Part shown: in pieces, positions 60 to 47,176 of the stretch | Numbering within the stretch: the first letter of the stretch is position 1 | Layout of the letters: each line of letters begins with the position of its first letter | Assembly (NCBI GenBank): GCA_950097015.1 | Contig: CATNEN010000005.1 | Location: 4,898,001-4,962,000, forward strand | Direction: 5' to 3' | Length of the DNA: 64,000 bases | DNA from: Macrostomum hystrix | Taxonomy: Eukaryota > Animalia > Platyhelminthes | Translations under genes and position numbers: made by a program | Notes under the pieces: generated by a model | Seen by the model: the letters and a program-made list of their open reading frames with translations, nothing else | Told to the model about the DNA's origin: nothing | Database searches by the model: none

Positions 60-1385
60 AGTTGGGATCTAAGAAAATTCAGTTGGGATCTGAGAATATT
101 CAGTTGGGATCTAAGAAGATTCGGTTGGGATCTGAGAAGATTCAGTTGGGATCTGAGAAGATTCGGTTGGGATCTGAGAAGATTCAGTTGGGATCTGAGA
201 AGATTCGGTTGGGATCTGAGAAGATTCAGTTGGGATCTGAGAATATTCAGTTGGGATCTAAGAATATTCAGTTGGGATCTGAGAAGATTCAGTTGGGATC
301 TAAGAAGACTCAGTTAGGATCTGAGAAGACTCAGTTGGGATCTGAGAAGATTCAGTTGGGATCTGAGAAGACTCAGTTGGGATCTGAGAAGATTCAGTTG
401 GGATCTGAGAAGATTCAGTTGGGATCTGAGAAGATTCAGTTGGGATCTAAGAATATTCAGTTGGGATCTGAGAAGATTCAGTTGTGATCTAAGAAGATTC
501 AGTTGGGATTTAAGAAGATTCAGTTGGGATCTGAGAAGATTCAGTTGGGATCGAAGAAGATTCAGTTAGGATCTGAGAAGATTCAGTTGGGATCTGAGAA
601 GATTCAGTTGGGATTTAAGAAGATTCAGTTGGAATCTGAGAAGATTCAGTTAAGATCGAAGAAGATTCCAGTTGGGATCTGAGAAGATTCAGTTGGGATC
701 TGAGAAGATTCAGTTGGGATTTAAGAAGATTCAGTTGGAATCTGAGAAGATTCAGTTGGGATCTGAGAAGATTCAGTTGGGATCTGAGAAGATTCAGTTA
801 TGATCTAAGAAGATTCAGTTGGGATCTGAGAAGATTCAGTTAGGATCTGAGAAGATTCAGTTGGGATCTGAGAAGATTCAGTTGGGATTTAAGAAGATTC
901 AGTTGGGATCTGAGAAGATTCAGTTGGGATCTGAGAAGATTCAGTTGGGATCTAAGAAGATTCAGTTGGGATCTGAGAAGATTCAGTTGGGATCTAAGAA
1001 GATTCAGTTGGGATCTGAGAAGATTCAGTTGGGATCTGAGAAGATTCAGTTGGGATTTAAGAAGATTCAGTTGGGATCTAAGAAGATTCAGTTGGGATTT
1101 AAGAAGATTCAGTAGGGATCTGAGAAGATTCAGTTGGGATCTAAGAAGACTCAGTTGGGATCTGAGAAGATTCAGTTGGGATCTGAGAAGATTCAGTTGG
1201 GATCTGAGAAGATTCCGTTGGGATTTAAGAAGATTCAGTTGGGATCTGAGAAGATTCAGTTGGGATCTGAGAAGATTCCGTTGGGATTTAAGAAGATTCA
1301 GTTGGGATCTGAGAAGATTCAGTTGGGATCTAAGAAGATTCAGTTGGGATCTGAGAAGATTCAGACGGGATTTAAGAAGATGCAG
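60..1385 (+). repeat. 21-bp minisatellite (GTTGGGATCTGAGAAGATTCA)n, left arm of an inverted pair
   Basis: About 60 tandem copies visible directly; source of the spurious GSEKIQL ORFs. Confidence 0.97.
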
Positions 1386-15274: not shown

Positions 15275-18200
15275 ATGACCGAAAGCAACGAGTTTGTCTG
15301 CAGCGATGGTCGCGTTGGTGAGATCTATGCTCAGCTCCTGAGAGCAATCGAGCTAAGAGACAAAAATTCAAAGCGCGAACTTTGCAACAGAATCTTACCA
15401 GAAATAAAAAACTACCCAGTCTATGCTGAGGTGTTTCTGCTAGCTGCTACTGACACGCGTCGAATAGTGCTAGAGTTTCTACTGACCGAATTCGGAAGCT
15501 TATCTTTGAAAGCGCAAGACAGTGGAGGTAGGAACTTGGTTCACTATGCTGCTTTCTACCAGAAGTACAGCAGATCACCGCCGGTTCTTTCTATGATAGT
15601 TTCGAAGATTGGCGCCAGGTCGCCTGTCTTGTTGATGAAGTGTAGAGGCGGACGCACTGCTGCGCACTATGCAGCAATCAACAAGAACAGCTCGAGTTCA
15701 CTTCGTTGGTTGATTGAGACGCAAAATGTCAACTTGCTTTTCATCGAAGATAAAAATCGAGACACGGCATTCTGTCTTGCGATACAACATCAAGACGTTT
15801 TCACAGTGCAAGCTCTACTTAGTAAGATTGGAGTGGAGAAGCTGCTCACTCGTGACTCGCTAGAACGCAACGCGCTCTACTTCGCAGTGCAAAATGAAAA
15901 CTCAATCGATGTGATTGACGTAGTTTGTCAGGTTTTGGATAGCGCGAATCGAAGCTCAGTCCTGAGATTTCTACAAGGCTCCAATTATAACGGAACTTTC
16001 CTGCACCAGTGTGCCCTCGCTTTCAATGGTAAAAATGTTGCTCGCCTTGTGAGAGGTCTAGCACCTGTGCTTAATTACCCAAGTCCACAGGCCGCGTTAA
16101 AGAATTCCTTAGACGATGCGGGTAGGAACCCGCTGTTCTATGCGCTTGTTGGCAAAATTTTTCAATTATTATTCGAAGACATCGTAGACCTAAGAGAGCA
16201 TCAGTGCATCGACACCGAAGGCAACACTCTGCTTCATGCACTGTTTTACGCATTCGACCTTCGAGCTACCATCGATGCTGAGCAGCTAGCCAACGCCGCC
16301 AGAGTCCTCATTCAGGCGGAAGTTAATCCGCTTTTAGAGAATTCGCGAAAACTGAACTGCCTATTGGCGACAAATATTGATACGGACAGTTTGAGTGCCA
16401 TTCTTGCACACCTTGCAGACACTGAGTTGAAGCGAACTTTTAAAAAGTTACAAAGCAACTCTGAGGGACTGCACGCTGCACACCTATTCTGTGGCCGATA
16501 CGACATTCGGAAGCTCGAGTCATCACTCAGCAGGCTCTTTGACCTCAGTCCTAGCGAGCTCTGGTCGATTCGGGTGTCTGACGGTCCGTTGAAGGGTGCT
16601 ACGTGCCTTCATTTCGCCTGCGCAGCTGGTAACGTTGAGAACATCGAGCACCTCCTTGACAACGGATTGAGTCTGTTCTCTCAAACTGTGGCGGAGCAAA
16701 CTTGCATCGACTTTGCCTGCGACAGTGGAAAGCTTCACGTCCTTATTAAAGCATCGGTCTGTTCAAACATTGATCTAAGCGAGATTTTGAAGAGTGTTGA
16801 TCTCCCCAAAAGAGCGCTGCAGCTTCCAGACCTTCAAAGTGCAAGGGCTTGCTTAAGAGCTTACAGACCAGCAGACATGCCAGTAGGAGTCGTGAAACGC
16901 TTTCAGGAAGCAGTCTTCCTACCAACGGAGGTAGAAATCATCATAGATGCATTGAAAAGGGACTCAAGTGAAATGCTAAGGTCGATGTTAAAACTAAACT
17001 TAAACACCGATGTGAGCTCGGTGTCAATATTGATGCATTACGATGCTACAGGTGTATCAGACGAATCAGAGGACAGCACTTTTGATGAGCTCGTTGAAAT
17101 TCTTGCTTTTATGCGTTTTGCTGACTTGCGCGTCAAATGCTTGAATTGCCCCGTGTCTGAATGTGCTATACGCCATCAGAAGCCAAAGTTTCTGTCTGAC
17201 TGGATGCTTTTGAACCAGTTTGAAATAATTCCGCGCACAATGCAGCTAATAATTAGGATTAGTAATTACAGAAATACTAATTTCCGGAAAATTAATAAAA
17301 TCCTAGATAGGACTCCGGAAAACAAGCTTTTCGAGCCATACGAACACGCCTTGACGCAGGTCATCAACGTACTTGAAGTGTTATTCCACAATGCGTCCAG
17401 CCATGAGCGTGATTTGCTTATCGACTACATGGAAGGAAACTTTACGGATTCAAAAAGCGACCCTGGACCAAAGTTTGCCTGTAAAGAGAGCTCAGGTGAC
17501 AAGGGTGCCAAAGCCGTAGTGGAGCTTGCTTTCAATATTGACTCTGACGAACTGTTTGCAACAAAGTGCATGATAAAACTAGTGAATCGACGGTGGAATA
17601 TGCCATCAGAGAAGTTGTTTCCTTCGGAAATGATTGCTAGCCGGTGCACCATACCAAGGATGATGATTCGGCAAAAGTTTATCGTGCACTTCGGTTTCCT
17701 ATCTATATTTGCCTTTTTTTTCTCTTGGTACCTCGTGGACTTTGGTCGAACATTGGAGAATCCTGCTGCTGATATTATTTTGCTGATGTACTCGCTCTCA
17801 TTAATAATGCAGGACTTCACTGACAGTTACCTAAATGTATCTCCAATTTTCAATTTTTCTTCAAGAAAAAAACATACTAACAAGTCCAATTCAGTGTTGA
17901 TTCATATGAGTAAGTGGTTCTACGGCTACGATCAGTGGTGCTCTTATTTGCTTTTTGCAGCCATTGTGATGAAGTTCCACGCACGAGTGAGCAACCCGGG
18001 ACTCCTGTACAACTGCCATATTGTCATGAGTACGTCTCTATTATTCTTCGTAGTTCGAGTTATAAGAATATTGGGCTATTTTAGGAGAGCCGGGACAATT
18101 CTTGCTATCATGGCTGATTCAAGTTTCAACATCGCAATGACACTATCGATAGTGTTTGTCTTTATCTGCGCATTCGGAATATTTTTCTATACTCTACTCT

Positions 18201-20224
18201 TCCCGATCGCGTCGGCTTCTGATGTTCGCGACGGCGCCGCAGTCATGCAGCAGCTCCTGCTTTTGCCATCGTCTCTGGTGTTCGGGTACTTTGAGAGGGC
18301 CGAGTTCTTGGTGTGTGGCTCGGGAAACAAAACTAACTGGTCCGATTGCGTTGATCCAACTGGATACAATGCCTTCAAAATACTGATGTTTGCATTCCTG
18401 ATTATCGTCAACATTCTTCTGTGGAACATCATGATTGGCCAGCTGAATGAAACAGTCAAGGGAATTCAGCCGCGAGTGCAGTGCATTTGGAGGCGGCATC
18501 GGTGCAGCCTGCTCAAGGAGATGACCAACATGAGTCCGATTCCGCTGCCATTTTCCTTTGTAGACTACACAATGCTTATTGGCGTAGGTTGCTGGAAACG
18601 CTATAAAAAAAATCGAGCTTCCATCCGAGCAGTGCATGCAGATGACGACGAGGTGAGAGTTTAATGATCGACTGAGCTATTAGATTAAAAAATCATTATA
18701 TGAAGAAAAAAATGTAGAAAAAACTTTTCGCAAATTCCTATTTTTGTCCATGAGCAAGACACTTATGCCGACGTAGACCATGCTTCAGCTCATATGCTGT
18801 GAACTTGCTGTAAGCTGTAAAATGGGTAACAGCATTCGCTGGGGTAGAAATTTGTACTAGTGTGGCAGCCTATAATAATAATAATAATTTCAGGAGGGCT
18901 GCGGGCAATGGCACATCATTTGGTGACACTAGACCCGCAGCCAGCGAGGAGGCAATTCTGCCCATTTCGCTGACTCCTGAGCACACACGCACACAGATAC
19001 TGTACGCAGGCACATCTCACACAGGTGTGTACATCTGCCCTGACTTTCTCATTGTCAGGCAGTGTGCACTTTCACTGTGCCTTGGAGGTTGGCCCTCAAT
19101 GGCGTAAATTGCTCGACAAGCCCCCAAGCCTTCTCTCCGCGGCTGCGCCCCAAATAAATGTGGCTCCGCCGTGGAATCGAACTTAGGGACCGTGGTGCGA
19201 GAGGCAAACGCGTTAACCGCTCTGCCATCGACCCCCGTGTGGCAGCCTCACACTAATTATAATAATGAATAACACCTGCCCCAATTGGACCAGATGTGCA
19301 GACGACAGCACAGCTTCAGCAATAGCGCGGCGCATCTGAAGGCTGCGTACGGCTGTTCAGTCCATGGACTGGGCGATGGCACACCCACCCTCAATTAATC
19401 CAGCTAAAGCATTAAACAGCTGGGTGAACTTAAGCAATGCAGAGTTACGTGTGTCTTTCTAAAGGGCACAAAAAGTTCTAGTGGACCTAGGAATCGAACC
19501 TCCGACCTTCAAGTCGTGAGTCCGACGCTCTAGAAACTAGGATACAAACCCTCAATGTGCTGCTCAGCTTGAATAGATAAGGGAGACATACAGCTTGAAC
19601 ACAGACATTGAAATGGAAACTTACGTTTGTCTGCATCTCTTTGAGCAGGCGCAAGAAAAGCCGAGTCACTGGTGGCAGGAGCGCCAATCGTTCGCCAACT
19701 ATCCGCAAGGCTATCGACGCTTTCTCACGTTCCAAGCTGAGCAGCTGAGGCGGCACCGGGGCAATCTTCGACGACCGATTGAGTCGGGGCGAAGCAACAC
19801 GGAAAAGTGTATTGCGCGCACGCAGAATCTTCAGACTGACCTGCAGGACAACCTGGCTAGGCTGACTGCCGAATTAAAGTACGCGATTCACGACGGTCTT
19901 GGTAAGCATGCGCGGCCTTGGGTACCCAGACCGCCACAATAAGATGAGACAAAGACTGCTGATACAAATATATCGTCAAATTTTAACTAGATAATTGACT
20001 GTAAGAATAATTAAGACTGTTCGTTAACCTGTACTGTCTTCTACAGTTAACTTGTTAACTTTAAAACGCTTCACTAGAGGCACTTAGAGTATTATGGAGA
20101 CAATTACTCGTATGTTCGCGAATATTTTTTGATTGCTTTCCAGCTTTCCAGCTTTCCTGCAGAGCAGCATTCTATGCACAAGTATTCAAGTAGAAGTACT
20201 TCGCAGGCCGAGGAGACCTTTTAG
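15275..20224 (+). CDS. TRP-superfamily cation channel: about 11 N-terminal ankyrin repeats, TRPM-like 6TM pore, TRP box and coiled coil; exons 15275-18652, 19649-19901 and tentatively 20163-20224
   Basis: Ankyrin motifs GRNLVHYAA, GRTAAHYAA, ERNALYFAV, GRNPLFYAL, GNTLLHAL, GATCLHFACAAGN. S4-S5 FFVVRVIRILGYFRRAGTILAIM..AFGIFFYTLLFP; S6/TRP box NILLWNIMIGQLNETV..WRRHR..SPIPLPF. The ORF ends at a donor GAG|GTGAGA (18652/3) that joins in phase 0 to CAG|GCG at 19649, a coiled-coil-like exon. The last exon is unresolved. Confidence 0.85.
18872..19236 (-). mobile_element. Full-length tRNA-derived SINE family A with 12-bp TSD
   Basis: Head GGGGGTCGATGGCAGAGCGGTTAACGCG...GTTCGATTCCAC (A and B boxes); (TTA)n tail; TSD GTGTGGCAGCCT at 18860-18871 and 19237-19248. 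Confidence 0.93.
19255..19532 (-). mobile_element. tRNA-derived SINE family B copy in TRP intron 1
   Basis: The - strand reads CTAGAGCGTCGGACTCACGACTTGAAGGTCGGAGGTTCGATTCC (tRNA-like), then the shared body and an ATT-rich tail. Confidence 0.87.
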
Positions 20225-20309
20225 AAAAAAATTGCAGTGTGTAGATAAGAGATAATGAGAGAGGGATGATGACATTATTTGCGAAAGATATGGGACACAG
20301 GAAATATTA

Positions 20310-20885
20310 GACAGAGGAGAGATGAGACAGGGAGAAATGCGACTGGGAGAGATAAGAGAGATATGGGACAGAAGCAATGCTACGGGGAGATGTGAGACAG
20401 ATGTGGGACAGGAGAGATGCGACTGGGAGATATGAGACAGATGTGGGACAGGAGAGATGAGACTGGGAGATATGAGACAGATGTGGGACAGGAGAGATGC
20501 GACTGGGGGATATGAGACAGATGTGGGACAGGAGAGATGCGACTGGGGGATATGAGACAGATGTGGGACAGGAGAGATGAGACTGGGAGATATGAGACAG
20601 ATGTGGGACAGGAGAGATGAGACTGGGAGATATGAGACAGATGTGGGACAGGAGAGATGCGACTGGGAGATATGAGACAGATGTGGGACAGGAGAGATGC
20701 GACTGGGAGATATGAGACAGATGTGGGACAGAGGAGAGATGAGACTGGGAGATATGAGACAGATGTGGGACAGAGGAGAGATGAGACTGGGAGATATGAG
20801 ACAGATGTGGGACAGGAGAGATGCGACTGGGAGATATGAGACAGATGTGGGACAGAGGAGAGATGAGACAGGGGAGAGTTGAGAC
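20310..20885. repeat. 40-bp GA-rich minisatellite (GAGATGCGACTGGGAGATATGAGACAGATGTGGGACAGGA)n
   Basis: Identical register at 20401, 20521 and 20641 (3x40); related to the reverse complement of the 16-mer at 21575-24740. Confidence 0.93.
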
Positions 20886-21574
20886 AGGTTGAGGTAAGAC
20901 CGGGAAGGGCCCGAATCCTTTGCCAACACGTGAGATTTGAGGTCCCGAGAATGTTGACCCTTGACTTGATAATTTTTTATTGACAACTGAAGAATTTTCC
21001 CCTTCGTGTGCTCACGCGAATATTGAGATTTTACTCCTGCTCACTGATTTATCCCATAAACTATCTAACACCTTAATTAGACAATTAGATTGCTTCTTAA
21101 TTAGTTCGTATCTCTTTGAAAAAGCAGAACTGTTAATTCAATTTTTTTTAGAATTCAACCGACCTTACTAAACTACTTTAAAGCGGAATTGAAGACTTTA
21201 GATATTTTAAAGCTGAAAATAGCTCGTATGTGTATTGCGTGTTTGCCTTGGCAAGTATTATATGCCATGAATACTCAAGATTGCCTTTTGCAAAATCATG
21301 TGTTAAACAACTTTATTTCTGTTTTATAACTAAGTATAGTGCTAACAAAATTTTTATTTTTATGTGCACAAAGTTCTGATAAAATCTATTTTTTATTACT
21401 ATTAGAAAGTTGATTTTCCGTGTAACAACAAGCGTACAAACAGAAGTGCATAAAGTGTTATTAATTTACTATTTAAATTTACCCAAGAGAGTGCCATTCG
21501 TTCATGTACGAGAATATTGGTACGTTTTTCCAACTTGAAGATGACTTGCTAAGAATTTTAAAAGGGAAAAATTC

Positions 21575-24500
21575 GCTACCGTGTCTCATCTCTCCCGTGT
21601 CTCATCTCTGCCTTTTCTCATCTCTCCCTTGTCTCATCTCTCCCATTTCTCATCTCTCCCTTGTCTCATCTCTCCCTTGTCTCATCTCTCCCTTTTCTCA
21701 TCTCTCATGTGTCTCTCTCTCCCGTGTCTCTCTCTTCCGTGTCTCATCTCTCCCTTGTCTCATCTCTGCCTTTTCTCATCTCTCCCTTGTCTCATCTCTC
21801 CCATTTCTCATCTCTCCCTTGTCTCATCTCTCCCTTGTCTCATCTCTGCCTTTTCTCATCTCTCCCTTGTCTCATCTCTCCCTTTTCTCATCTCTCATGT
21901 GTCTCTCTCTCCCGTGTCTCTCTCTTCCGTGTCTCATCTCTCCCTTGTCTCATCTCTCCCGTGTCTTATCTCTCCCGTGTCTTAACTCTCCCGGGTCTCA
22001 TCTCTCCCGTGTCTCTCTCTCTCGCGTCCGTGTCTCATCTCTCCCTTTTCTCATCTCTCCCGTGTCTCATCTCTCCCTTGTCTCATCTCTCCCGTGTCTC
22101 ATCTCTCCCGTGTCTCATCTCTCCCGTGTCTCATCTCTCCCGTGTCTCATCTCTTCCTATCTCGTCGCTACCCTGTCTCATCTCTCCCGTGTCTCATCTC
22201 TCCCGTGTCTCATCTCTCCCGTGTCTTAACTCTCCCGGGTCTCATCTCTCCCGTGTCTCTCTCTCTCGCGTCCGTGTCTCATCTCTCCCTTTTCTCATCT
22301 CTCCCGTGTCTCATCTCTCCCTTGTCTCATCTCTCCCGTGTCTCATCTCTCCCGTGTCTTAACTCTCCCGGGTCTCATCTCTCCCGTGTCTCATCTCTTC
22401 CTATCTCGTCGCTACCCTGTCTCATCTCTCCCGTGTCTCATCTCTCCCGTGTCTCATCTCTCCCGTGTCTTAACTCTCCCGGGTCTAATCTCTCCCGTGT
22501 CTCATCTCTTCCTATCTTGTCGCTGCCGTGTCTCGTCTCTCCCTTTTCTCATCTCTCCCGTGTCTCATCTCTCCAGTGTCTTAACTCTCCCGGGTCTCAT
22601 CTCTCCAGTGTCTTAACTCTCCCGGGTCTCATCTCTCCCGTGTCTCTCTCTCTCGGATCTCATCTCTCATGTGTCTCATCTCTCCCGTGTCTCATCTCTC
22701 CCGTGTCTCATCTCTCCCGTGTCTCATCTCTCCCGTGTCTCATCTCTTCCTATCTCGTCGCTACCCTGTCTCATCTCTCCCGTGTCTCATCTCTCCCGTG
22801 TCTCATCTCTCCCGTGTCTTAACTCTCCCGGGTCTCATCTCTCCCGTGTCTCTCTCTCTCGCGTCCGTGTCTCATCTCTCCCTTTTCTCATCTCTCCCGT
22901 GTCTCATCTCTCCCTTGTCTCATCTCTCCCGTGTCTCATCTCTCCCGTGTCTTAACTCTCCCGGGTCTCATCTCTCCCGTGTCTCATCTCTTCCTATCTC
23001 GTCGCTACCCTGTCTCATCTCTCCCGTGTCTCATCTCTCCCGTGTCTCATCTCTCCCGTGTCTTAACTCTCCCGGGTCTAATCTCTCCCGTGTCTCATCT
23101 CTTCCTATCTTGTCGCTGCCGTGTCTCGTCTCTCCCTTTTCTCATCTCTCCCGTGTCTCATCTCTCCAGTGTCTTAACTCTCCCGGGTCTCATCTCTCCA
23201 GTGTCTTAACTCTCCCGGGTCTCATCTCTCCCGTGTCTCTCTCTCTCGCGTCCGTGTCTCATCTCTCCCTTTTCTCATCTCTCCCGTGTCTCATCTCTCC
23301 CTTGTCTCATCTCTCCCGTGTCTCATCTCTCCCGTGTCTTAACTCTCCCGGGTCTCATCTCTCCCGTGTCTCATCTCTTCCTATCTCGTCGCTACCCTGT
23401 CTCATCTCTCCCGTGTCTCATCTCTCCCGTGTCTCATCTCTCCCGTGTCTTAACTCTCCCGGGTCTAATCTCTCCCGTGTCTCATCTCTTCCTATCTTGT
23501 CGCTGCCGTGTCTCGTCTCTCCCTTTTCTCATCTCTCCCGTGTCTCATCTCTCCAGTGTCTTAACTCTCCCGGGTCTCATCTCTCCAGTGTCTTAACTCT
23601 CCCGGGTCTCATCTCTCCCGTGTCTCTCTCTCTCGCGTCCGTGTCTCATCTCTCCCTTTTCTCATCTCTCCCGTGTCTCATCTCTCCCTTGTCTCATCTC
23701 TCCCGTGTCTCATCTCTCCCGTGTCTTAACTCTCCCGGGTCTCATCTCTCCCGTGTCTCATCTCTTCCTATCTCGTCGCTACCCTGTCTCATCTCTCCCG
23801 TGTCTCATCTCTCCCGTGTCTCATCTCTCCCGTGTCTTAACTCTCCCGGGTCTAATCTCTCCCATGTCTCATCTCTTCCTATCTTGTCGCTGCCGTGTCT
23901 CGTCTCTCCCTTTTCTCATCTCTCCCGTGTCTCATCTCTCCAGTGTCTTAACTCTCCCGGGTCTCATCTCTCCAGTGTCTTAACTCTCCCGGGTCTCATC
24001 TCTCCCGTGTCTCTCTCTCTCGGATCTCATCTCTCATGTGTCTCATCTCTCCCTTTTCTCATCTCTCCCGTGTCTCATCTCTCCCTTGTCTCATCTCTCC
24101 CGTGTCTCATCTCTCCCTTGTCTCATCTCTCCCGTGTCTCATCTCTCCCGTGTCTTAACTCTCCCGGGTCTCATCTCTCCCGTGTCTCATCTCTTCCTAT
24201 CTCGTCGCTACCCTGTCTCATCTCTCCCGTGTATCATCTCTCCCGTGTCTCATCTCTCCCGTGTCTTAACTCTCCCGGGTCTAATCTCTCCCGTGTCTCA
24301 TCTCTTCCTATCTTGTCGCTGCCGTGTCTCGTCTCTCCCTTTTCTCATCTCTCCCGTGTCTCATCTCTCCAGTGTCTTAACTCTCCCGGGTCTCATCTCT
24401 CCAGTGTCTTAACTCTCCCGGGTCTCATCTCTCCCGTGTCTCTCTCTCTCGGATCTCATCTCTCATGTGTCTCATCTCTCCCTTTTCTCATCTCTCCCGT

Positions 24501-24740
24501 GTCTCATCTCTCCCTTGTCTCATCTCTCCCGTGTCTCATCTCTCCCTTGTCTCATCTCTCCCGTGTCTCATCTCTCCCTTGTCTCATCTCTCCCGTGTCT
24601 CATCTCTCCCGTGTCTCATCTCTCCCTTGTCTCATCTCTCCCGTGTCTCATCTCTCCCCTGTCTCATCTCTCCCGTGTCTCATCTCTCCCGTGTCTCATC
24701 TCTCCCGTGTCTCATCTCTCCCCTGTCTTAACTCTCTTTT
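21575..24740. repeat. 16-bp CT-rich minisatellite (TCTCCCGTGTCTCATC)n with a 387-bp higher-order repeat
   Basis: 3.2-kb array; identical blocks recur at 22931, 23318 and 23705. Confidence 0.97.
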
Positions 24741-24999
24741 GTCTCATTTCTCTCTTTCACATTTTATCTGTTGGTTTATTCTCTGCTTAATTTTCACCAA
24801 GTAACTCTTGATTGAATTACTATTTTTCTTTTTATATTTCTTACGTGTTTTATTGTTGAATAATAGCCGAAGGAGCGGACTGATATTTTGTGATATTTAA
24901 TTGATTAATTATAATTGTAAGTTCATAGCTAGCTTGCTGAATTCGACCAAAATGGTCATCATTTATTTTGACCTACGATTTATGCTAACATCAGTATTT

Positions 25000-25050
25000 T
25001 GAGGAGGGCTGTGGGCAATGGTACATCATTTGGTGTGACCTGCAGCCAGC
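25000..25050 (-). mobile_element. SINE family A 3' fragment
   Basis: GAGGAGGGCTGTGGGCAATGGTACATCATTTGGTG. Confidence 0.7.
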
Positions 25051-25684
25051 TTGGCAGCGGGTATTTGAACTACGGTGTTTCTACAGATAAAAAGTTAAAT
25101 TAATGAATAAACTGATTCAATCTTTGAAACTACGAGCTTGTATTTACGATTGAAAACAACCCTCAGGTGATTCGATGACGATATACCGATCGAGATGAAG
25201 CCATCCAGCCTCAACGTCAGCACAGCAAATCATCACCTTGCTGATTCACCCGATGACGCCAGCAGTGTTGACAGTGAAGAACCGGCTAAGAATATTGCAA
25301 AGAAAATGTGCGACTCTTCAACGTCTTCGTCCGAAGCGTCTACTCCTTCCACGGGGGTACCAACCAAGCGATAGCTTTTGAAAGCTTCACAACCACCAGT
25401 CTGAGTGACGAAGTTCAAACTAGAAGTAATGGGTCAGTGTTCACCAGCAATCAACTAATTGACCTGCTAGACGCTAGACGAGCTAGAAGCTGCTCACAAA
25501 TTGGCAGCGGTGAAGCGGGAAGTTCTGATCATTGCTGTTGTGTATGCGGCTTGCATGCTGCCTAGAGTCCAAGCGCACGTGGCGCGTTGTGATTGGCTGG
25601 GGGGTTTTACTGTCTGCCCCAGACCAGTCTAAGCCGGGGTGGGGGTTGGTTGTTGACAGTCTAAATTATATAAAATAGTGCACA

Positions 25685-25950
25685 TTGTCAACTGGGGGAT
25701 TATTGTCAACTGGGGGATCATTGTCAACTGGGGGATCATTGTCAACTGGGGGATCATTGTCAACTGGGGGATCATTGTCAACTGGGGGATCATTGTCAAC
25801 TGGGGTATCATTGTCAACTGGGGGTTCATTGTCAACTGGGGGATCATTGTCAACTGGGGGATCATTGTCAACTGGGGGATCATTGTCAACTGGGGGATCA
25901 TTGTCAACTGGGGGATCATTGTCAACTGGGTGATTATCATCACCTGGGGG
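25685..25950. repeat. 18-bp minisatellite (ATTGTCAACTGGGGGATC)n
   Basis: About 14 tandem copies; source of the IVNWGI and MIPQLT ORFs. Confidence 0.95.
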
Positions 25951-26498
25951 ATCATTGTAGATTTAAAAAGCTGTAAATTACTAATAGTTACTGTAAGTTA
26001 CTAATACGGCCTTAGTAACTGTTTCGCTTTGCCCGGGATCGATAGCAACTCCTGACATTTTCCCGTCGTCAAAACATCAAATAAAGCCAACAGTGGTTTT
26101 CCGATTTCGGATAGCAGTTAATCACTATTTAGATATTCATTGCTAATCAATATAAATGTTGTGTCTGTGCCTTAAAGTACTGTCACAGCAAGATCGCACC
26201 GAGGTACTTGAAAGTCCATGAAAGTCGTGCAATTTAAATATCTAGAGTTAAATATCTTTTTATTTGCGTAGTTTTTGTAAACTTTTTATCAAGATATTTT
26301 TTTTATTATTATTCTAATGATATTTTTTAATTTTGGTCTGATCTAGCTGAGTTGCTGATTAAGAAATATATATTTTTATTACAGCCATTAAGATTTCATG
26401 TGCCAATGGGCATTAAACAAACTACGAGCGTAGATTTTTATAGTGTTTTAGAATTCACTGCTTTAAAAAGCAGTTTCAGTTACTTGGCTTTTATGCAT

Positions 26499-29400
26499 CT
26501 AAATTCTCAGAAGTCTGTCTTCAGCACTCGGATTGGCCCCGTTCGTGTCTTCATTGATGCCGCAGTCGACATCAGAACCCGAAGCCGCCGCCGCCGCGGC
26601 CACGGCAGCCATCATTTCAGCGGCCCGCAGTTGCCCAATCTTCAGAATGCCGCAGAAGAGCAGCAGTTGAGTCAGGTACAGCGCACCGCACACCAGCCAC
26701 ACGTCGGCAAAGCTCTTGCGAGTATCGTAAACTAGACCTGGGTTCCATTTATACGCTCGTATATGATGAGATGTGAGAGATGAGACACGAGAGGGATGAA
26801 ACACGGGGGGATGAGACACGGGGGGGATGAGACACGGGAGGGATGAGACACGGGAGGGATGAGACACGGGGGGAGATGAGACACGGGAGCGATGAGACAC
26901 GGGAGCGATGAGACACGGGAGAGATGAGACACGGGAGGGATGAGACACGGGGGGGATGAGACACGGGAGGGATGAGACACGGGAGGGATGAGACACGGGG
27001 GGGAGATGAGACACGGGAGCGATGAGACACGGGAGCGATGAGACACGGGAGCGATGAGACACGGGAGAGATGAGACACGGGAGCGATGAGACACGGGAGG
27101 GATGAGACACGGGGGAGATGAGACACGGGAGGGATGAGACACGGGAGAGATGAGACACGGGGGAGATGAGACACGGGAGAGATGAGACAAGGGAGAGATG
27201 AGACACGGGAGAGATGAGACACGGGAGAGATGAGACACGGGAGAGATGAGACACGGGAGAGATGAGACACGGAGAGATGAGACACGGGAGAGATGAGACA
27301 CGGGAGAGATGAGACACGGGAGATATACGACACGGGAGAGATGGGACACGGGAGAGATGAGACACGGGAGAGATAAGACACGGAGAGATGAGACACGGAG
27401 AGATGAGACAAGGGAGCGATGAGACACGGGAGAGGTCAGACACGGGAGGGATGAGACATGGGGGAGATGAGACACGGGAGGGATGAGACACGGGAGAGAT
27501 GAGACACGGGAGAGATGAGACACGGGAGCGATGAGACACGGGAGGGATGAGACACGGGGGAGATAAGGCATGGGAGGGATGAGACATTCAAACCAAGTTA
27601 ATGTCTGTGTTCGGTTTTTCAGTTATCTAAGACCCAGTAATCTAGTTGAGTAGGCCATGCTCACCTGAAAACAGTGGGCCAACCAGAATGCCGACTCCGG
27701 ACCACAAGTTTGTTGCCGACCAGGCGATATCGATCGGCAGTTTCGTCACCTCTCCGGATGCCGCGTACTGATAGACAATGGACATGCCAAGCAGTCCGCC
27801 TAGCACTGTGAATCGAATTTTAACATTGTTTGCGATGTTAGCTCTGCCCATAAAGTTCAAAAGCATCTTCACAACAAAGCATCTTCAGTCACTCTTCAGA
27901 AACTTCAGTCACTCTTCAGAAACTTCAGTCACTCTTCAGAAGCTTTAGTCACTCCTCAGAAAATTCTGTCATTCTTCAGAAAATTCAGTCAACCATTAGA
28001 AACTTTAGTCACTCTTCAGAAACTTTAGTCACTCCTCAGAAAATTCTGTCACTCCTCAGAAAATTCAGTCACTCCTCAGAAAATTCAGTCACTCCTCAGA
28101 AAATTCTGTCACTCCTCAGAAAATTCAGTCACTCCTCAGAAAATTCAGTCACTCCTCAGAAACTTTAGTCACTCTTCAGAAACTTAAGTCACTCTTCAGA
28201 AACTTAAGTCACTCTTCAGAAACTTCATTCACTCTTCAGAAACTTTAGTTACTCCTCAGAAACTTCAGTCACTCCTCAGAAAATTCAGTCACTCCTCAGA
28301 AACTTCAGTCACTCTTTAGAAACTTCATTCACTCTTCCTAAACTTTAGTCAATCATCAGAAACTTCAGTCACTCTTCAGAAACTTCAGTCACTCTTCAGA
28401 AGCTTTAGTCACTTCTCAGAAACTTCAGTCACTCTTTAGAAACTTCATTCACTCTTCCTAAACTTTAGTCAATCATCAGAAACTTCAGTCACTCTTCAGA
28501 AACTTCAGTCACTCTTCAGAAACTTCAGTCACTCTTCAGAAACTTCAGTCACTCTTCAGAAACTTCAGTCACTCTTCAGAAACTTCAGTCACTCTTCAGA
28601 AGCTTTAGTCACTTCTCAGAAACTTCAGTCACTCTTTAGAAACTTCATTCACTCTTCCTAAACTTTAGTCAATCATCAGAAACTTCAGTCACTCTTCAGA
28701 AACTTCAGTCACTCTTCAGAAACTTCAGTCACTCTTCAGAAACTTCAGTCACTCTTCAGAAGCTTTAGTCACTTCTCAGAAACTTCAGTCACTCTTTAGA
28801 AACTTCATTCACTCTTCCTAAACTTTAGTCAATCATCAGAAACTTCAGTCACTCTTCAGAAACTTCAGTCACTCTTCAGAAACTTCAGTCACTCTTCAGA
28901 AACTTCAGTCACTCTTCAGAAGCTTTAGTCACTTCTCAGAAAATTCAGTCACTCTTCAGAAAATTCAGTCACTCTTCAGAAAATTCTGTCACTCCTCAGA
29001 AAATTCTGTCACTCCTCAGAAAATTCTGTCACTCCTCAGAAAATTCAGTCACTCTTCAGAAACTTTAGTTACTCCTCAGAAACTTCAGTCACTCTTTAGA
29101 TACTTTAGTGACTTCAGTAAACATTCTTCAGTCGCCGACTCTCGCTAGTTACTGACCCATCGAACAGGCCAGAATCTCAGCAAATCCGTCATCAATGAAG
29201 GGCCAAGCGAGGCAGAGAGCGCACAGACCAGCTGACGAGACCACATTGACAGTTGACAGTCGGCCTTTCAATGTGTCGCCAAGAGCAGAGCCAGTGACGT
29301 AGGTGACGCATTCGGCCAGTGACAAAGCGGCAACCACCCACTTGGAGTCGGCGAGGCCGATGCCCTTCTGCTGCATGTAGTAGGCCTACGGAAGTATAGA

Positions 29401-32400
29401 AATAATAAGTCACGTTTTATTTGTTAAGTCCTATTTAGAAATAGAGAAACCACATTAGAAATAGAGAAACCATATTAGAAATAGAGAAACCACATTAGAA
29501 ATAGAGAAACCACATTAGAAATAGAGAAACCACATTAGAAATAGAGAAACCACATTAGAAATAGAGAAACCACATTAGAAATAGAGAAACCACATTAGAA
29601 ATAGAGAAACCACATTAGAAATAGAGAAACCACATTAGAAATAGAGAAACCACATTAGAAATAGAGAAACCACATTAGAAATAGAGAAACCACATTAGAA
29701 ATAGAGAGAACCCCCATTAAAAGTAGAGAAACCCGATTAAAGTTAGAGAAACCCTATTAGAAACAGAGAAACATGATTAAATATAGAGAAACCACATTAG
29801 AAATAGAGAAACCACATTAAAAATAGAGAAACCACATCCAATTCCTAAATGGAAAAATCCCATTGCTAGGTCCCATTTTCAATACGCTGATCGCTAGGAA
29901 GCAGCAAGGCATACCAGATTCATAAACGGCATGTAGAATCCAACAAAGGCTATGGCATTGCCCAGCAACCAGAGTCCGAGCTCGGGTCTCACTGCCGCCA
30001 GCCCAGGACTGCACACGGCGCGTAGACGATAATGAAAATCGCCTTGGTCCAGTGGTGCAGCTGACGAGTCGTCGTTGTCTTCTTGAAGGCGCCTGCTGGC
30101 AGGCAGGAAGGCCAACATGCTGCATGGCAGGCCGATAATTAGGATGAGAATGCCGCAGACACGAAATGCTGCTGCTGGGCCGTAGCTGCTCACTAGCCAA
30201 CCATTCAGAGGGTTGAACAGCAGACTGCCTGCAAATTTTCAATCAGCCTTGTGTTGGTAGTTTGTATAGAATCGAACGTCTGACCTAAGGGCTGTTGTTT
30301 ATTCGAATCCCAATCTGTGTCCTTGATTGCACCTGCCCAAATTCGAGCCAGATGTGCAGCCGACAGTACCACGGCGTATCTGAAGGCTGCGAACGGCTGT
30401 TCAGTCCATGGACTGGGGGGACGCCACACCCACTATCAAATACCCCAGCTAGATGCCTGTACTCATTTAACAGCTTGGGGGTGAACTGAAGCAATTCAGA
30501 GTTAAGTGTGTCTTGCTAAAGGACACAAATTGTTCCAGTGGAGTCGGGAATCGAACCCCCGACCTCTCTAGTCGTGGATCGCTTAGTCGAGATTCTGGGA
30601 CTTTGTTAATCTTCGAGAATATCCTGAGTGAATTCTTACCAATAGGGTAGCCGCACATAAGACTGCTAGTTGCCAGCACATGCCTCTGATGCCCAACAGG
30701 ATAGTGATCGATAATCACCAGACTGGAGCTCATGTACGTTAGCGAAGATCCAACACCGTGCAGCAGAGTGTAGGTCAGCAGGAGCCAGAGCTCAGTTCTG
30801 GCTGCCAACACCTGAGCTGACATGAAACAGGAAGCCGCCAGGATCACAATGCCTACTGTTGCCACCAATCTGAATGCGTCCCTATTGGCACCGATGCTGC
30901 GAATCAGCAGTACAGACACTGGCGACAGTGACAGTGACAGGGAGAATGAAAGAGTGCCGATCCAGTCTGAAAATTAGATAGATAGATAGATAGATAGACA
31001 AACAGATAGATAGATAGATATGAGAGCTGCTGTGAATAGGCGTTGAGAACAGTCTGTGAATAGGCGTTGAGAACAGTCTGTGAATAGGCGTTGAGAACAG
31101 CTGTGAATAGGCGTTGAGAACAGCTGTGAATAGGCGTTGAGAACAGCTGTGAATAGGCGTTGAGAACAGCTGTGAATAGGCGTTGAGCACAGCTGTGAAT
31201 AGGCGTTGAGAACAGTCTGTGAATAGGCGTTGAGAACAGTCTGTGAATAGGCGTTGAGAACAGCTGTGAATAGGCGTTGAGCACAGCTGTGAATAGGCGT
31301 TGAGAACAGCTGTGAATAGGCGTTGAGAACAGCTGTGAATAGGCGTTGAGAACAGTCTGTGAATAGGCGTTGAGAACAGCTGTGAATAGGCGTTGAGCAC
31401 AGCTGTGAATAGGCGTTGAGAACAGTCTGTGAATAGGCGTTGAGAACAGTCTGTGAATAGGCGTTGAGAACAGCTGTGAATAGGCGTTGAGCACAGCTGT
31501 GAATAGGCGTTGAGAACAGTCTGTGAATAGGCGTTGAGAACAGCTGTGAATAGGCGTTGAGCACAGCTGTGAATAGGCGTTGAGAACAGCTGTGAATAGG
31601 CGTTGAGAACAGCTGTGAATAGGCGTTGAGAACAGCTGTGAATAGGCGTTGAGAACAGTCTGTGAATAGGCGTTGAGAACAGCTGTGAATAGGCGTTGAG
31701 CACAGCTGTGAATAGGCGTTGAGAACAGCTGTGAATAGGCGTTGAGAACAGCTGTGAATAGGCGTTGAGAACAGTCTGTGAATAGGCGTTGAGAACAGCT
31801 GTGAATAGGCGTTGAGCACAGCTGTGAATAGGCGTTGAGAACAGTCTGTGAATAGGCGTTGAGAACAGCTGTGAATAGGCGTTGAGAACAGCTGTGAATA
31901 GGCGTTGAGAACAGCTGTGAATAGGCGTTGAGAACAGCTGTTGAATGGGAATTGAGAACAGCTGTGAATAGGCGTTGAGAACAGCTGTGAATAGGCGTTG
32001 AGAACAGCTGTGAATAGGCGTTGAGAACAGCTGTGAATAGGCGTTGAGAACAGCTGTGAATAGGCGTTGAGAACAGTCTGTGAATAGGCGTTGAGAACAG
32101 CTGTGAATAGGCGTTGAGAACAGCTGTGAATAGGCGTTGAGAACAGCTGTGAATAGGCGTTGAGAACAGCTGTGAATAGGCGTTGAAAACAGCTGTGAAT
32201 AGGCGTTGAGAACAGCTGTGAATAGGCGTTGAGAACAGCTGTGAATAGGCGTTGAGAACAGCTGTTGAATGGGAATTGAGAACAGCTAATTATGGAAAGA
32301 ACATTGCCTATCTTTAAGCTTACTGTGCAGTGCCATTGCACTGTGTCCGTGCGCTCCTCCCATAGATAATGAGGAGTTCACTGCATTGTTATCTAATTCG

Positions 32401-34562: not shown

Positions 34563-47176
<12,614 letters not shown>

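Follow-up and report, generated by a model that had tools for sequence, protein, structure and literature searches.

An ankyrin-bearing TRPM-like channel gene of Macrostomum hystrix, a probable diverged relative of the flatworm TRPM_MCLZ channels

On the forward strand of a 64,000-nucleotide stretch of the Macrostomum hystrix genome (GenBank assembly GCA_950097015.1, contig CATNEN010000005.1, positions 4,898,001 to 4,962,000; hereafter the window), positions 15275 to 19901 probably hold a protein-coding gene whose product would be a cation-channel subunit that assembles into tetramers. The predicted product belongs to a flatworm lineage of ankyrin-bearing TRPM-like proteins, within which we would place it in a second, faster-evolving Macrostomum clade and not among the orthologues of TRPM_MCLZ, a channel known from Schistosoma mansoni, where the drug meclonazepam targets it. 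Its layout, in which an ankyrin-repeat array (ANK) precedes a linker of MHR4 type and a channel core of TRPM type, has already been published for TRPM_MCLZ, and the gene is a very diverged free-living relative of that channel and no new kind of channel.

In S. mansoni, Sm.TRPM_MCLZ (Smp_333650) is encoded by three exons and has a long N-terminus with several ankyrin-like repeats, then S1-S6 and a TRP helix. Its cDNA has been cloned and expressed, giving a Ca2+-permeable cation channel in HEK293 cells that is activated by (S)-meclonazepam and loses function with the substitutions H946Y and Y1038A (PMC10788528). TRPM_MCLZ is without MHR1/2 or SLOG and has ankyrin-like modules there instead (PMC11731825), and its clade adjoins the TRPMs, the name ‘TRPM-like’ having been proposed on account of the ankyrin repeats (PMC12861061). 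A preliminary description of the window locus held that TRPM and TRPS channels lack ankyrin repeats, which is what Himmel et al. (2020) state for canonical TRPM and TRPS, the latter with a SLOG-linked N-terminus, but the later flatworm literature records TRPM_MCLZ as an exception.

Gene model

The gene is modelled with two coding exons, the first of which encodes the ankyrin array, an MHR4-like linker, S1-S6, the TRP helix and the post-TRP segment. Predicted features are listed in window coordinates, with residues numbered along the window protein; labels such as P0001 are our handles for individual proteins.

15275..18652, +: coding exon 1 of 1126 codons, from its ATG up to the GT donor (open reading frame; donor GTGAGA after 18652)
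15308..16774, +: array of about 12 ankyrin repeats, spanning residues ~12-500 (Pfam; PDB matches; helix pairs in the model)
17147..17605, +: MHR4-like helical domain and pre-S1 motif, residues 625-777, QFEIIP ... ELFATKCMIKLVNRRW (hhalign; match to TRPM structures from model residue ~24)
17666..18445, +: S1-S6 core, residues 798-1057 (AlphaFold; phmmer and profile matches to TRPM structures; Foldseek)
17666..18445, +: first core helices, S1 798-821, S2 830-859, S3 873-905, S4 910-933, S4-S5 linker 937-948
17666..18445, +: remaining core helices, S5 953-975, pore helix 987-1002, S6 1028-1057
18233..18349, +: pore helix, filter F1003-G1004-Y1005-F-E1007 and pore-loop Cys1014/Cys1025 (aligned to TRPMs and to the family)
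18455..18529, +: TRP helix, residues 1061-1085, W1072-RRHR (model helix 565-589, offset +496; W 98% conserved in the superfamily alignment)
18530..18652, +: post-TRP segment up to the end of exon 1, with SPIPLPF ahead of a helix (aligns with TRPM ‘lPPPf’; P1092 invariant)
18653..19648, +: intron 1, GT...AG, between codons, 996 nt (splice signals)
19649..19901, +: coding exon 2, conserved motif and short heptad-like helix (AG before 19649; tblastn with the tails of P0001-P0003; open reading frame 19595-19942)

Exon 1 lies in an uninterrupted open reading frame (15275-18664, +, 1129 amino acids (aa)) and matches aa 577-1622 of P0001 from Macrostomum lignano at E 8e-170 by tblastn. The nearest in-frame stop upstream of the ATG at 15275 is only 8 codons away, and tblastn with the M. 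lignano relatives as queries found no extra ankyrin-coding sequence upstream of 15275. The 1126 codons of exon 1, the GT after 18652 and the AG before 19649 are present in the sequence as had been described. Exon 2 matches aa 1644-1730 of P0001 (41% identity, E 2e-13, tblastn) as well as the tails of P0002 and P0003, and its motif WW...FANYP..YRRFLTFQAEQLR is kept in three M. lignano paralogues. P0001 also has a 144-nt whole-codon intron, and, with the intron marked by a slash, its ...EEEAE/KQQQSVWW and the ...DDDE/AQEKPSHWW of the window gene put the two introns at the same place within two residues, suggesting that this intron is old within the clade. A relaxed tblastn search that took the C-terminal ends of P0001-P0003 as queries and reached as far as 50 kb turned up no third exon, giving only noise past 19942. 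Coding sequence divided among few exons is a trait of the ankyrin TRPM-like family; in S. turkestanicum, for example, three exons code for TRPM_MCLZ (aa 1-~140, ~140-595 and 595-1378).

A TRPM-type channel core

The region from S1 to the TRP helix is, by its sequence, of TRPM type, as the preliminary description proposed. When the last 379 residues of exon 1 were compared with solved structures by phmmer, the best match was nvTRPM2 (E 3.6e-10), followed by TRPM4, 3, 2, 5, 8 and 7, and the sole non-TRPM among the single-sequence matches listed was a 56-residue S6 stretch of TRPV3 (E 0.06). A family profile (A1) combining the window protein with four M. lignano relatives aligned to TRPM2/4/8/3/5/7 from S1 past the TRP helix at E 3.5e-30 (zebrafish TRPM2) to 5e-18, and 60 of the 60 matches listed were TRPM. 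Pfam gave a sub-threshold Ion_trans match at aa 886-1064. An AlphaFold model of residues 497-1126, based on an 82-sequence alignment, reached a predicted local distance difference test score (pLDDT) of 81 and a predicted template modelling score of 0.82, and a Foldseek search with this model returned only TRPM among its top 50, over 600-700 columns. In a VIA fold comparison against one representative per PDB cluster, TRPM4/7/2 scored Z 15-16 with 409-428 residues aligned, starting from model residue ~24, while TRPC scored Z 12.9-14.1 (287-318 residues), NOMPC Z 13.5 (306) and TRPV2 Z 15.0 (205 transmembrane residues). Discrimination between subfamilies is modest by fold alone and clear by sequence; an ESM-Atlas feature search gave a mixed list of TRPM, TRPC, TRPA and TRPV and was not discriminating.

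The motifs quoted in the preliminary description (pre-S1, S5, the Cys pair, S6, the TRP box WRRHR and SPIPLPF) are all present and family-conserved, with W774 in the pre-S1 motif ...ELFATKCMIKLVNRRW and G968 and P977 in the S5 segment FGIFFYTLLFP. The filter had been called degenerate, which is too simple a term, as FGY, which aligns with TRPM FGQ/YGE, keeps the Gly and is followed by the acidic E1007. Its third residue is Tyr1005 in the window protein where TRPMs have Gln or Glu, Leu or Ile in its paralogues, and Glu in the basal P0036. The C-terminal coiled coil is at best plausible, exon 2 having a short heptad-like stretch and no Pfam match to TRPM_tetra.

Canonical TRPMs such as nvTRPM2 (6CO7), zebrafish TRPM2 (6D73) and human TRPM4 (8RCR) are homologous to the window protein from S1 to TRP and share with it MHR4 together with the pre-S1 motif, the Cys pair of the pore loop, the Gly of the filter, Asn and Ile in S6, the Trp of the TRP helix and prolines in the post-TRP segment; they are its best structural matches, over more than 400 residues. 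They differ from it in carrying SLOG/MHR1-2 and MHR3 where it has a long ankyrin array and in having Gln or Glu in the filter where it has a hydrophobic Tyr; the window protein also gave no TRPM_tetra match and has neither NUDT9H nor a kinase domain.

Ankyrin repeats in place of SLOG/MHR1-3

The N-terminal part of exon 1 matched Ank_2, Ank_4, Ank_5, Ank and Ank_3 in Pfam at about aa 60-500 (E 1e-17 to 9e-08) and DARPin and ankyrin entries in the PDB. An AlphaFold model of the whole exon-1 product, based on a 5-sequence alignment, was too poor overall for a fold search (pLDDT 56), but its ankyrin part reached pLDDT 60-85 and shows ~12-13 helix pairs over residues 12-500, so that the earlier count of about 11 repeats was a fair one. 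Pfam gave no LSDAT/SLOG or TRPM2-domain match in the window protein, a jackhmmer profile seeded by a hemichordate TRPM N-terminus found nothing in it, and hhalign of its N-terminus against TRPM MHR1-4 gave probabilities below 2% except at MHR4.

As the first ~228 positions of profile A1 were unaligned to TRPM, the linker between the ankyrin array and S1 was tested on its own with hhalign. The linker of the window clade aligned with that of the TRPM_MCLZ clade (97.2%, E 4.5e-11, 130 columns), which in turn aligned with TRPM MHR4 (99.5%, E 1.6e-22), while the direct comparison of the window-clade linker with TRPM MHR4 gave 63% (E 6.9e-05). All three alignments are collinear, pairing QFEIIP with QFDVLP and ...ELFATKCMIKLVNRRW with the TRPM pre-S1 motif FiaH.cCQ..L..iW.G. 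On these alignments the linker is a diverged MHR4 with its pre-S1 motif, and the ankyrin repeats therefore replace SLOG/MHR1-3 only; the earlier statement that they stand instead of the MHR domains thus needs to be narrowed, since MHR4 is retained. Furthermore, the two ankyrin clades form one collinear 455-column alignment from ANK to pre-S1 (window 285-785 to Sm-type 63-687; 99.4%, E 1.9e-21), within whose ankyrin repeats the register is inherently ambiguous. Set against a match to TRPM confined to MHR4, this collinearity provides independent support for a single ANK-MHR4 fusion.

Relatives among flatworms

A word-based homologue search with the whole protein was swamped by ankyrin words and yielded four M. 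lignano hypothetical proteins at 27-36% identity, and the same search with the channel part alone gave no matches, M. lignano paralogues included. As the latter search was empty, an exhaustive profile search was used, giving 1446 matches, of which 39 reached E<=1e-30. Those that covered the whole profile, linker and core, were all from M. lignano wherever they were named, and the weaker matches cover the core only. Classification with an ankyrin profile and the jackhmmer profile of the hemichordate TRPM N-terminus gave three classes of match: (i) SLOG/MHR1-4 TRPMs, (ii) proteins with ankyrin repeats and MHR4, and (iii) proteins of the window type, with P0036 and P0039 bridging classes (ii) and (iii). 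Representative proteins with the ANK-MHR4-channel layout number at least 43 and come from Macrostomum, trematodes and cestodes; what had been described as an unusual chimeric or deeply divergent architecture is therefore no novel chimera, and for TRPM_MCLZ it is published.

A Dicrocoelium class (ii) protein used as query recovered trematode and cestode orthologues. Among them, P0198 and P0217 correspond to CAH8438365.1 and CAH8481013.1, the accessions expressed in the Journal of Biological Chemistry paper, and the same cluster also contains S. mansoni XP_018647895.1; P0197 combines Ank and Ion_trans, has no SLOG, and carries H946 and Y1038. These accessions and features indicate that class (ii) includes bona fide TRPM_MCLZ.

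The nearest relatives of the window protein are the M. lignano proteins P0001 (PAA ‘BOX15_Mlig023275g1’), P0005 (A0A1I8J8S0) and P0002 (BOX15_Mlig016225g2), annotated merely as hypothetical, ANK_REP_REGION or Ion_trans proteins; P0001 is 36% identical over 87% of the protein and 37% identical in the core. They share with the window protein the linker, an FG(L/I)FE filter, the Cys pair, an LWR(R/K) TRP box, the post-TRP intron position and WW...YRRFL, and differ in having up to ~2x as many ankyrin repeats, longer coiled-coil tails, and the superfamily consensus at sites that are altered in the window protein, with 4-7 deviations compared with its 15.

Other proteins recovered in the searches had unusual domain contexts. 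P0013 is fused to an EF-hand and P0177 to an integrase; these two, along with P0178 and P0190, are M. lignano UniProt models, some of them 2489-3003 aa long, and the fusions are probably merged gene models or transposon insertions. A genuine fusion of an EF-hand to an ankyrin-bearing TRPM-like channel (P0013) would, if real, be noteworthy. Separately, four proteins with a TRPM core, P0064, P0080, P0110 and P0142 (1209-1345 aa), group together with good support. Their long N-termini were matched in Pfam neither by ankyrin nor by SLOG and gave just a weak MHR4-type signal; they could be TRPS-like or represent another N-terminal variant.

Phylogeny of the channel core

A tree was inferred from 309 core columns (S1 to post-TRP) and 97 rows with IQ-TREE (LG+C20+F+G4), after removal of near-identical proteins from the same cluster and of fragments whose N-terminus could not be interpreted. 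It is unrooted, comprising rows with a TRPM-type core and no outgroup, and its bootstrap fell short of full convergence (correlation 0.982). Three clans are joined at one node. The window clade (17 rows, support 100/99) is so far found in Macrostomum only. The TRPM_MCLZ-type clade (26 rows, 100/97) consists of an M. lignano subclade (100/99) and a group uniting P0039/P0040 with Neodermata (100/98). The third clan (54 rows, 99/96) comprises 49 SLOG-bearing TRPMs and 5 long proteins of unidentified N-terminus, and its branch, at 99/96, is the split of all ankyrin-bearing rows from all other sampled rows. The window clade is distinct from the clade holding the neodermatan TRPM_MCLZ and their M. 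lignano co-members, and the window gene is accordingly not placed as an orthologue of TRPM_MCLZ; it is the most derived member found in its own clade.

The window protein and TRPM_MCLZ (S. mansoni, UniProt A0A5K4FCC0) agree in the order of their domains: an ankyrin N-terminus that lacks SLOG/MHR1-2 leads into a linker of MHR4 type, S1-S6 of TRPM type, the TRP helix and helices at the C-terminus. Both genes are intron-poor, and both fall on the ankyrin side of the 99/96 split from the SLOG-bearing TRPMs. Ankyrin repeats are more numerous in the window protein, however, and its MHR4 has diverged much further. The two also differ in intron positions, in the filter (...AFYSIFE, with Y1038, in TRPM_MCLZ versus FGYFE) and in the drug pocket (His946 versus Arg931).

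P0039/P0040, ankyrin-bearing proteins from Logan assemblies, are sister of the neodermatan TRPM_MCLZ orthogroup (100/98), and knowing the organism they come from would show when TRPM_MCLZ proper arose.

Channels of the TRPM_MCLZ type have been validated as targets of anthelmintics, and publications on them deal with parasitic species only. Relatives of TRPM_MCLZ are carried by the free-living, experimentally tractable Macrostomum, which also has a second clade that shares the ANK-MHR4-channel layout, is much larger and evolves faster. This window clade offers natural variation at the filter (FG-Tyr/Leu/Ile versus FG-Gln/Glu in TRPM), the Ca2+ site and the drug pocket, and could serve the study of gating and ion selection within that layout.

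Predicted function and possible decay

By analogy with TRPM and TRPM_MCLZ, the channel would consist of four subunits with the S5-S6 pore at their centre, its TRP helix and MHR4 layer would couple events in the cytoplasm or in the S1-S4 cavity to the S6 gate, and the channel would pass cations non-selectively. S1-S4 is predicted to form a TRPM-type voltage-sensor-like domain, followed by S5-pore-S6 with the TRPM pore-loop disulfide pair. In TRPM2/4/5/8 structures the S2/S3 Ca2+ site is made up of E, Q, N and D. The window protein has D847, D850, Y883 and D886 at these positions, and its paralogues retain the Asn. In S4, R928 is kept and R931 occupies the place of the TRPM_MCLZ pocket His946, where the window clade has Ala; the S4-S5 Gly-Pro is replaced by Gly-Thr; and S6 reads N1051-I-M-I1054-G against the consensus NLLIA. 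The changes at Tyr883, Gly-Thr, NIMIG and Arg931 suggest that the activating stimulus and selectivity of the channel likely differ from those of its relatives.

Several observations weigh against the interpretation of the gene as a working channel of the ankyrin-bearing TRPM-like lineage. Direct BLASTP gives a weak match between the window protein and TRPM_MCLZ (E 9e-05, with 24% identity across S4-TRP), so that it is profiles and the tree that carry the family link. In that tree the window protein has a long terminal branch (1.41), and, as the tree is unrooted, the two ankyrin clades are not proven sisters. The window protein is off consensus at 15 of 33 strongly conserved columns, compared with 4-12 in the window clade and 0-2 in TRPM_MCLZ orthologues, and these departures together with the long branch raise the possibility that channel function may be altered or lost. 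At the level of the gene, exon 2 may close at the GT after 19901 or run on to the in-frame stop 19940-19942. In each of four runs from a single study of 2020, with 43-50 M letters per run and of unknown library type, 82% of the words sampled from 15275-19901 occur, a share near the exonic 78% that would fit transcript assemblies and is proof of nothing.

These points bear most directly on the reading that the locus is a decaying or neofunctionalised paralogue, with an open frame but non-conducting alone, either as a young pseudogene or as a modulatory subunit of heteromers. The 15 changed positions, near-invariant elsewhere, include S3 Asn->Tyr, S4-S5 GP->GT and S6 NLLIA.F->NIMIG.L, which fits such a reading as does the terminal branch, and the numerous M. 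lignano paralogues imply high redundancy. However, the 1126 codons are free of stops despite no more than 37% identity to every known relative, pointing to long-term purifying selection, the splice signals and intron position are conserved, the word share in the four small runs sits near the exonic share, and Cys1014/Cys1025, the filter Gly, the S6 Asn and Ile, the TRP Trp1072 and the post-TRP Pro1092 are all retained. The long open frame thus indicates constraint, and the substitutions indicate altered gating or selectivity, or beginning decay; on balance we consider a non-conducting paralogue unlikely.

Origin of the ankyrin-bearing layout

A broader alternative concerns the ankyrin clan as a whole, that is, the window and TRPM_MCLZ-type clades together. 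Instead of having arisen in flatworms, these could be the surviving sister of all SLOG-bearing TRPM (and TRPS), retaining an ancestral state of ANK, MHR4/linker-helical domain and six transmembrane helices as in TRPC/TRPN, in which case the TRPM stem would have exchanged an ankyrin array for SLOG/MHR1-3 and not the reverse. Such a reading is allowed because the ankyrin clan attaches outside the 54 other sampled rows at 99/96 in an unrooted tree, but the distribution restricted to flatworms and the long branches count against it. So does an approximately unbiased (AU) test, in which joining the ankyrin clan to the TRPM7-type clade was not rejected (log-likelihood difference 6.3, p 0.30), which leaves a TRPM7-type origin neither supported nor rejected. 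We regard this deep sister relationship as quite improbable. With a rooted tree, the window clade could decide whether ankyrin repeats are ancestral or regained in the TRPM lineage.

The preliminary description took the size of exon 1 as a sign of retroduplication or domain shuffling, which would make the locus a new chimera in which an ankyrin array was recently grafted onto a TRPM pore. Both parts do lie in one giant exon, and canonical TRPM and TRPS are reported to be without ankyrin repeats. Yet the same architecture is found in dozens of Macrostomum, trematode and cestode proteins and has been published; the ANK-MHR4 junction is collinear between both clades, with MHR4 retained; and paucity of introns is a family trait, with the intron of the window gene common to M. 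lignano. The three exons of S. turkestanicum TRPM_MCLZ and the P0001 intron lead us to reject a recent retrocopy at the window locus, and the cloned and expressed Sm.TRPM_MCLZ cDNA excludes an annotation artefact as the source of the combined layout elsewhere. The size of the exon is consequently no evidence for recent shuffling or retroduplication at the locus, and a recent local chimera is very improbable.

TRPS (soromelastatin, ced-11-like), as defined by Himmel et al. (2020), differs from the window protein, which has ankyrin repeats and no SLOG. TRPC and TRPN (NOMPC) come closer in body plan, sharing ankyrin repeats, a linker-helical domain that is the counterpart of MHR4, six transmembrane helices, a TRP helix and C-terminal helices, and their fold matches take in the linker domain, but with fewer residues aligned than for TRPM and no significant sequence similarity among the matches listed. 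That the core truly derives from TRPC, TRPN, TRPA or TRPV, with its TRPM likeness due to convergence or a search artefact, is scarcely credible despite this body plan and the close fold scores, since the profile matches listed were uniformly TRPM, TRPM matches exceed 400 residues and include the MHR4 region where those to TRPV span ~200 transmembrane residues, the published flatworm TRP tree puts TRPM_MCLZ next to the TRPMs (PMC12861061), and, the TRPV3 S6 fragment aside, resemblance to these four subfamilies is at the level of fold only. The grouping of the pore with TRPA, TRPC, TRPN or TRPV, named in the preliminary description as an outcome that would overturn its reading, was accordingly not found by sequence.

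Repeats in and around the gene

Within intron 1, at window positions 19140-19560, there are strings resembling tRNA-derived fragments similar to short interspersed nuclear elements, for example ...GGAATCGAACCTCCGACCTTCAAGTCGTGAGTCCGACGCTCT...; ARAGORN found no tRNA in the intron and a repeat finder no internal repeats. Downstream (3') of exon 2, minisatellite arrays occupy positions 20286-32000 almost throughout, and this stretch may conceal another exon of the channel gene. The arrays include a 16-nt unit repeated 198 times (21579-24752) and the reverse complement of the same unit repeated 51 times (26775-27586), along with a 40-nt unit (20326-20887), units of 18, 20 and 20 nt, and a 23/116-nt unit from 31021. 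Further along, spurious tblastn matches occurred as identical pairs 8517 nt apart, at ~35978-36369 and ~44495-44886, which suggests a duplicated segment in a GC-rich (53-56%) block at 36-44 kb.

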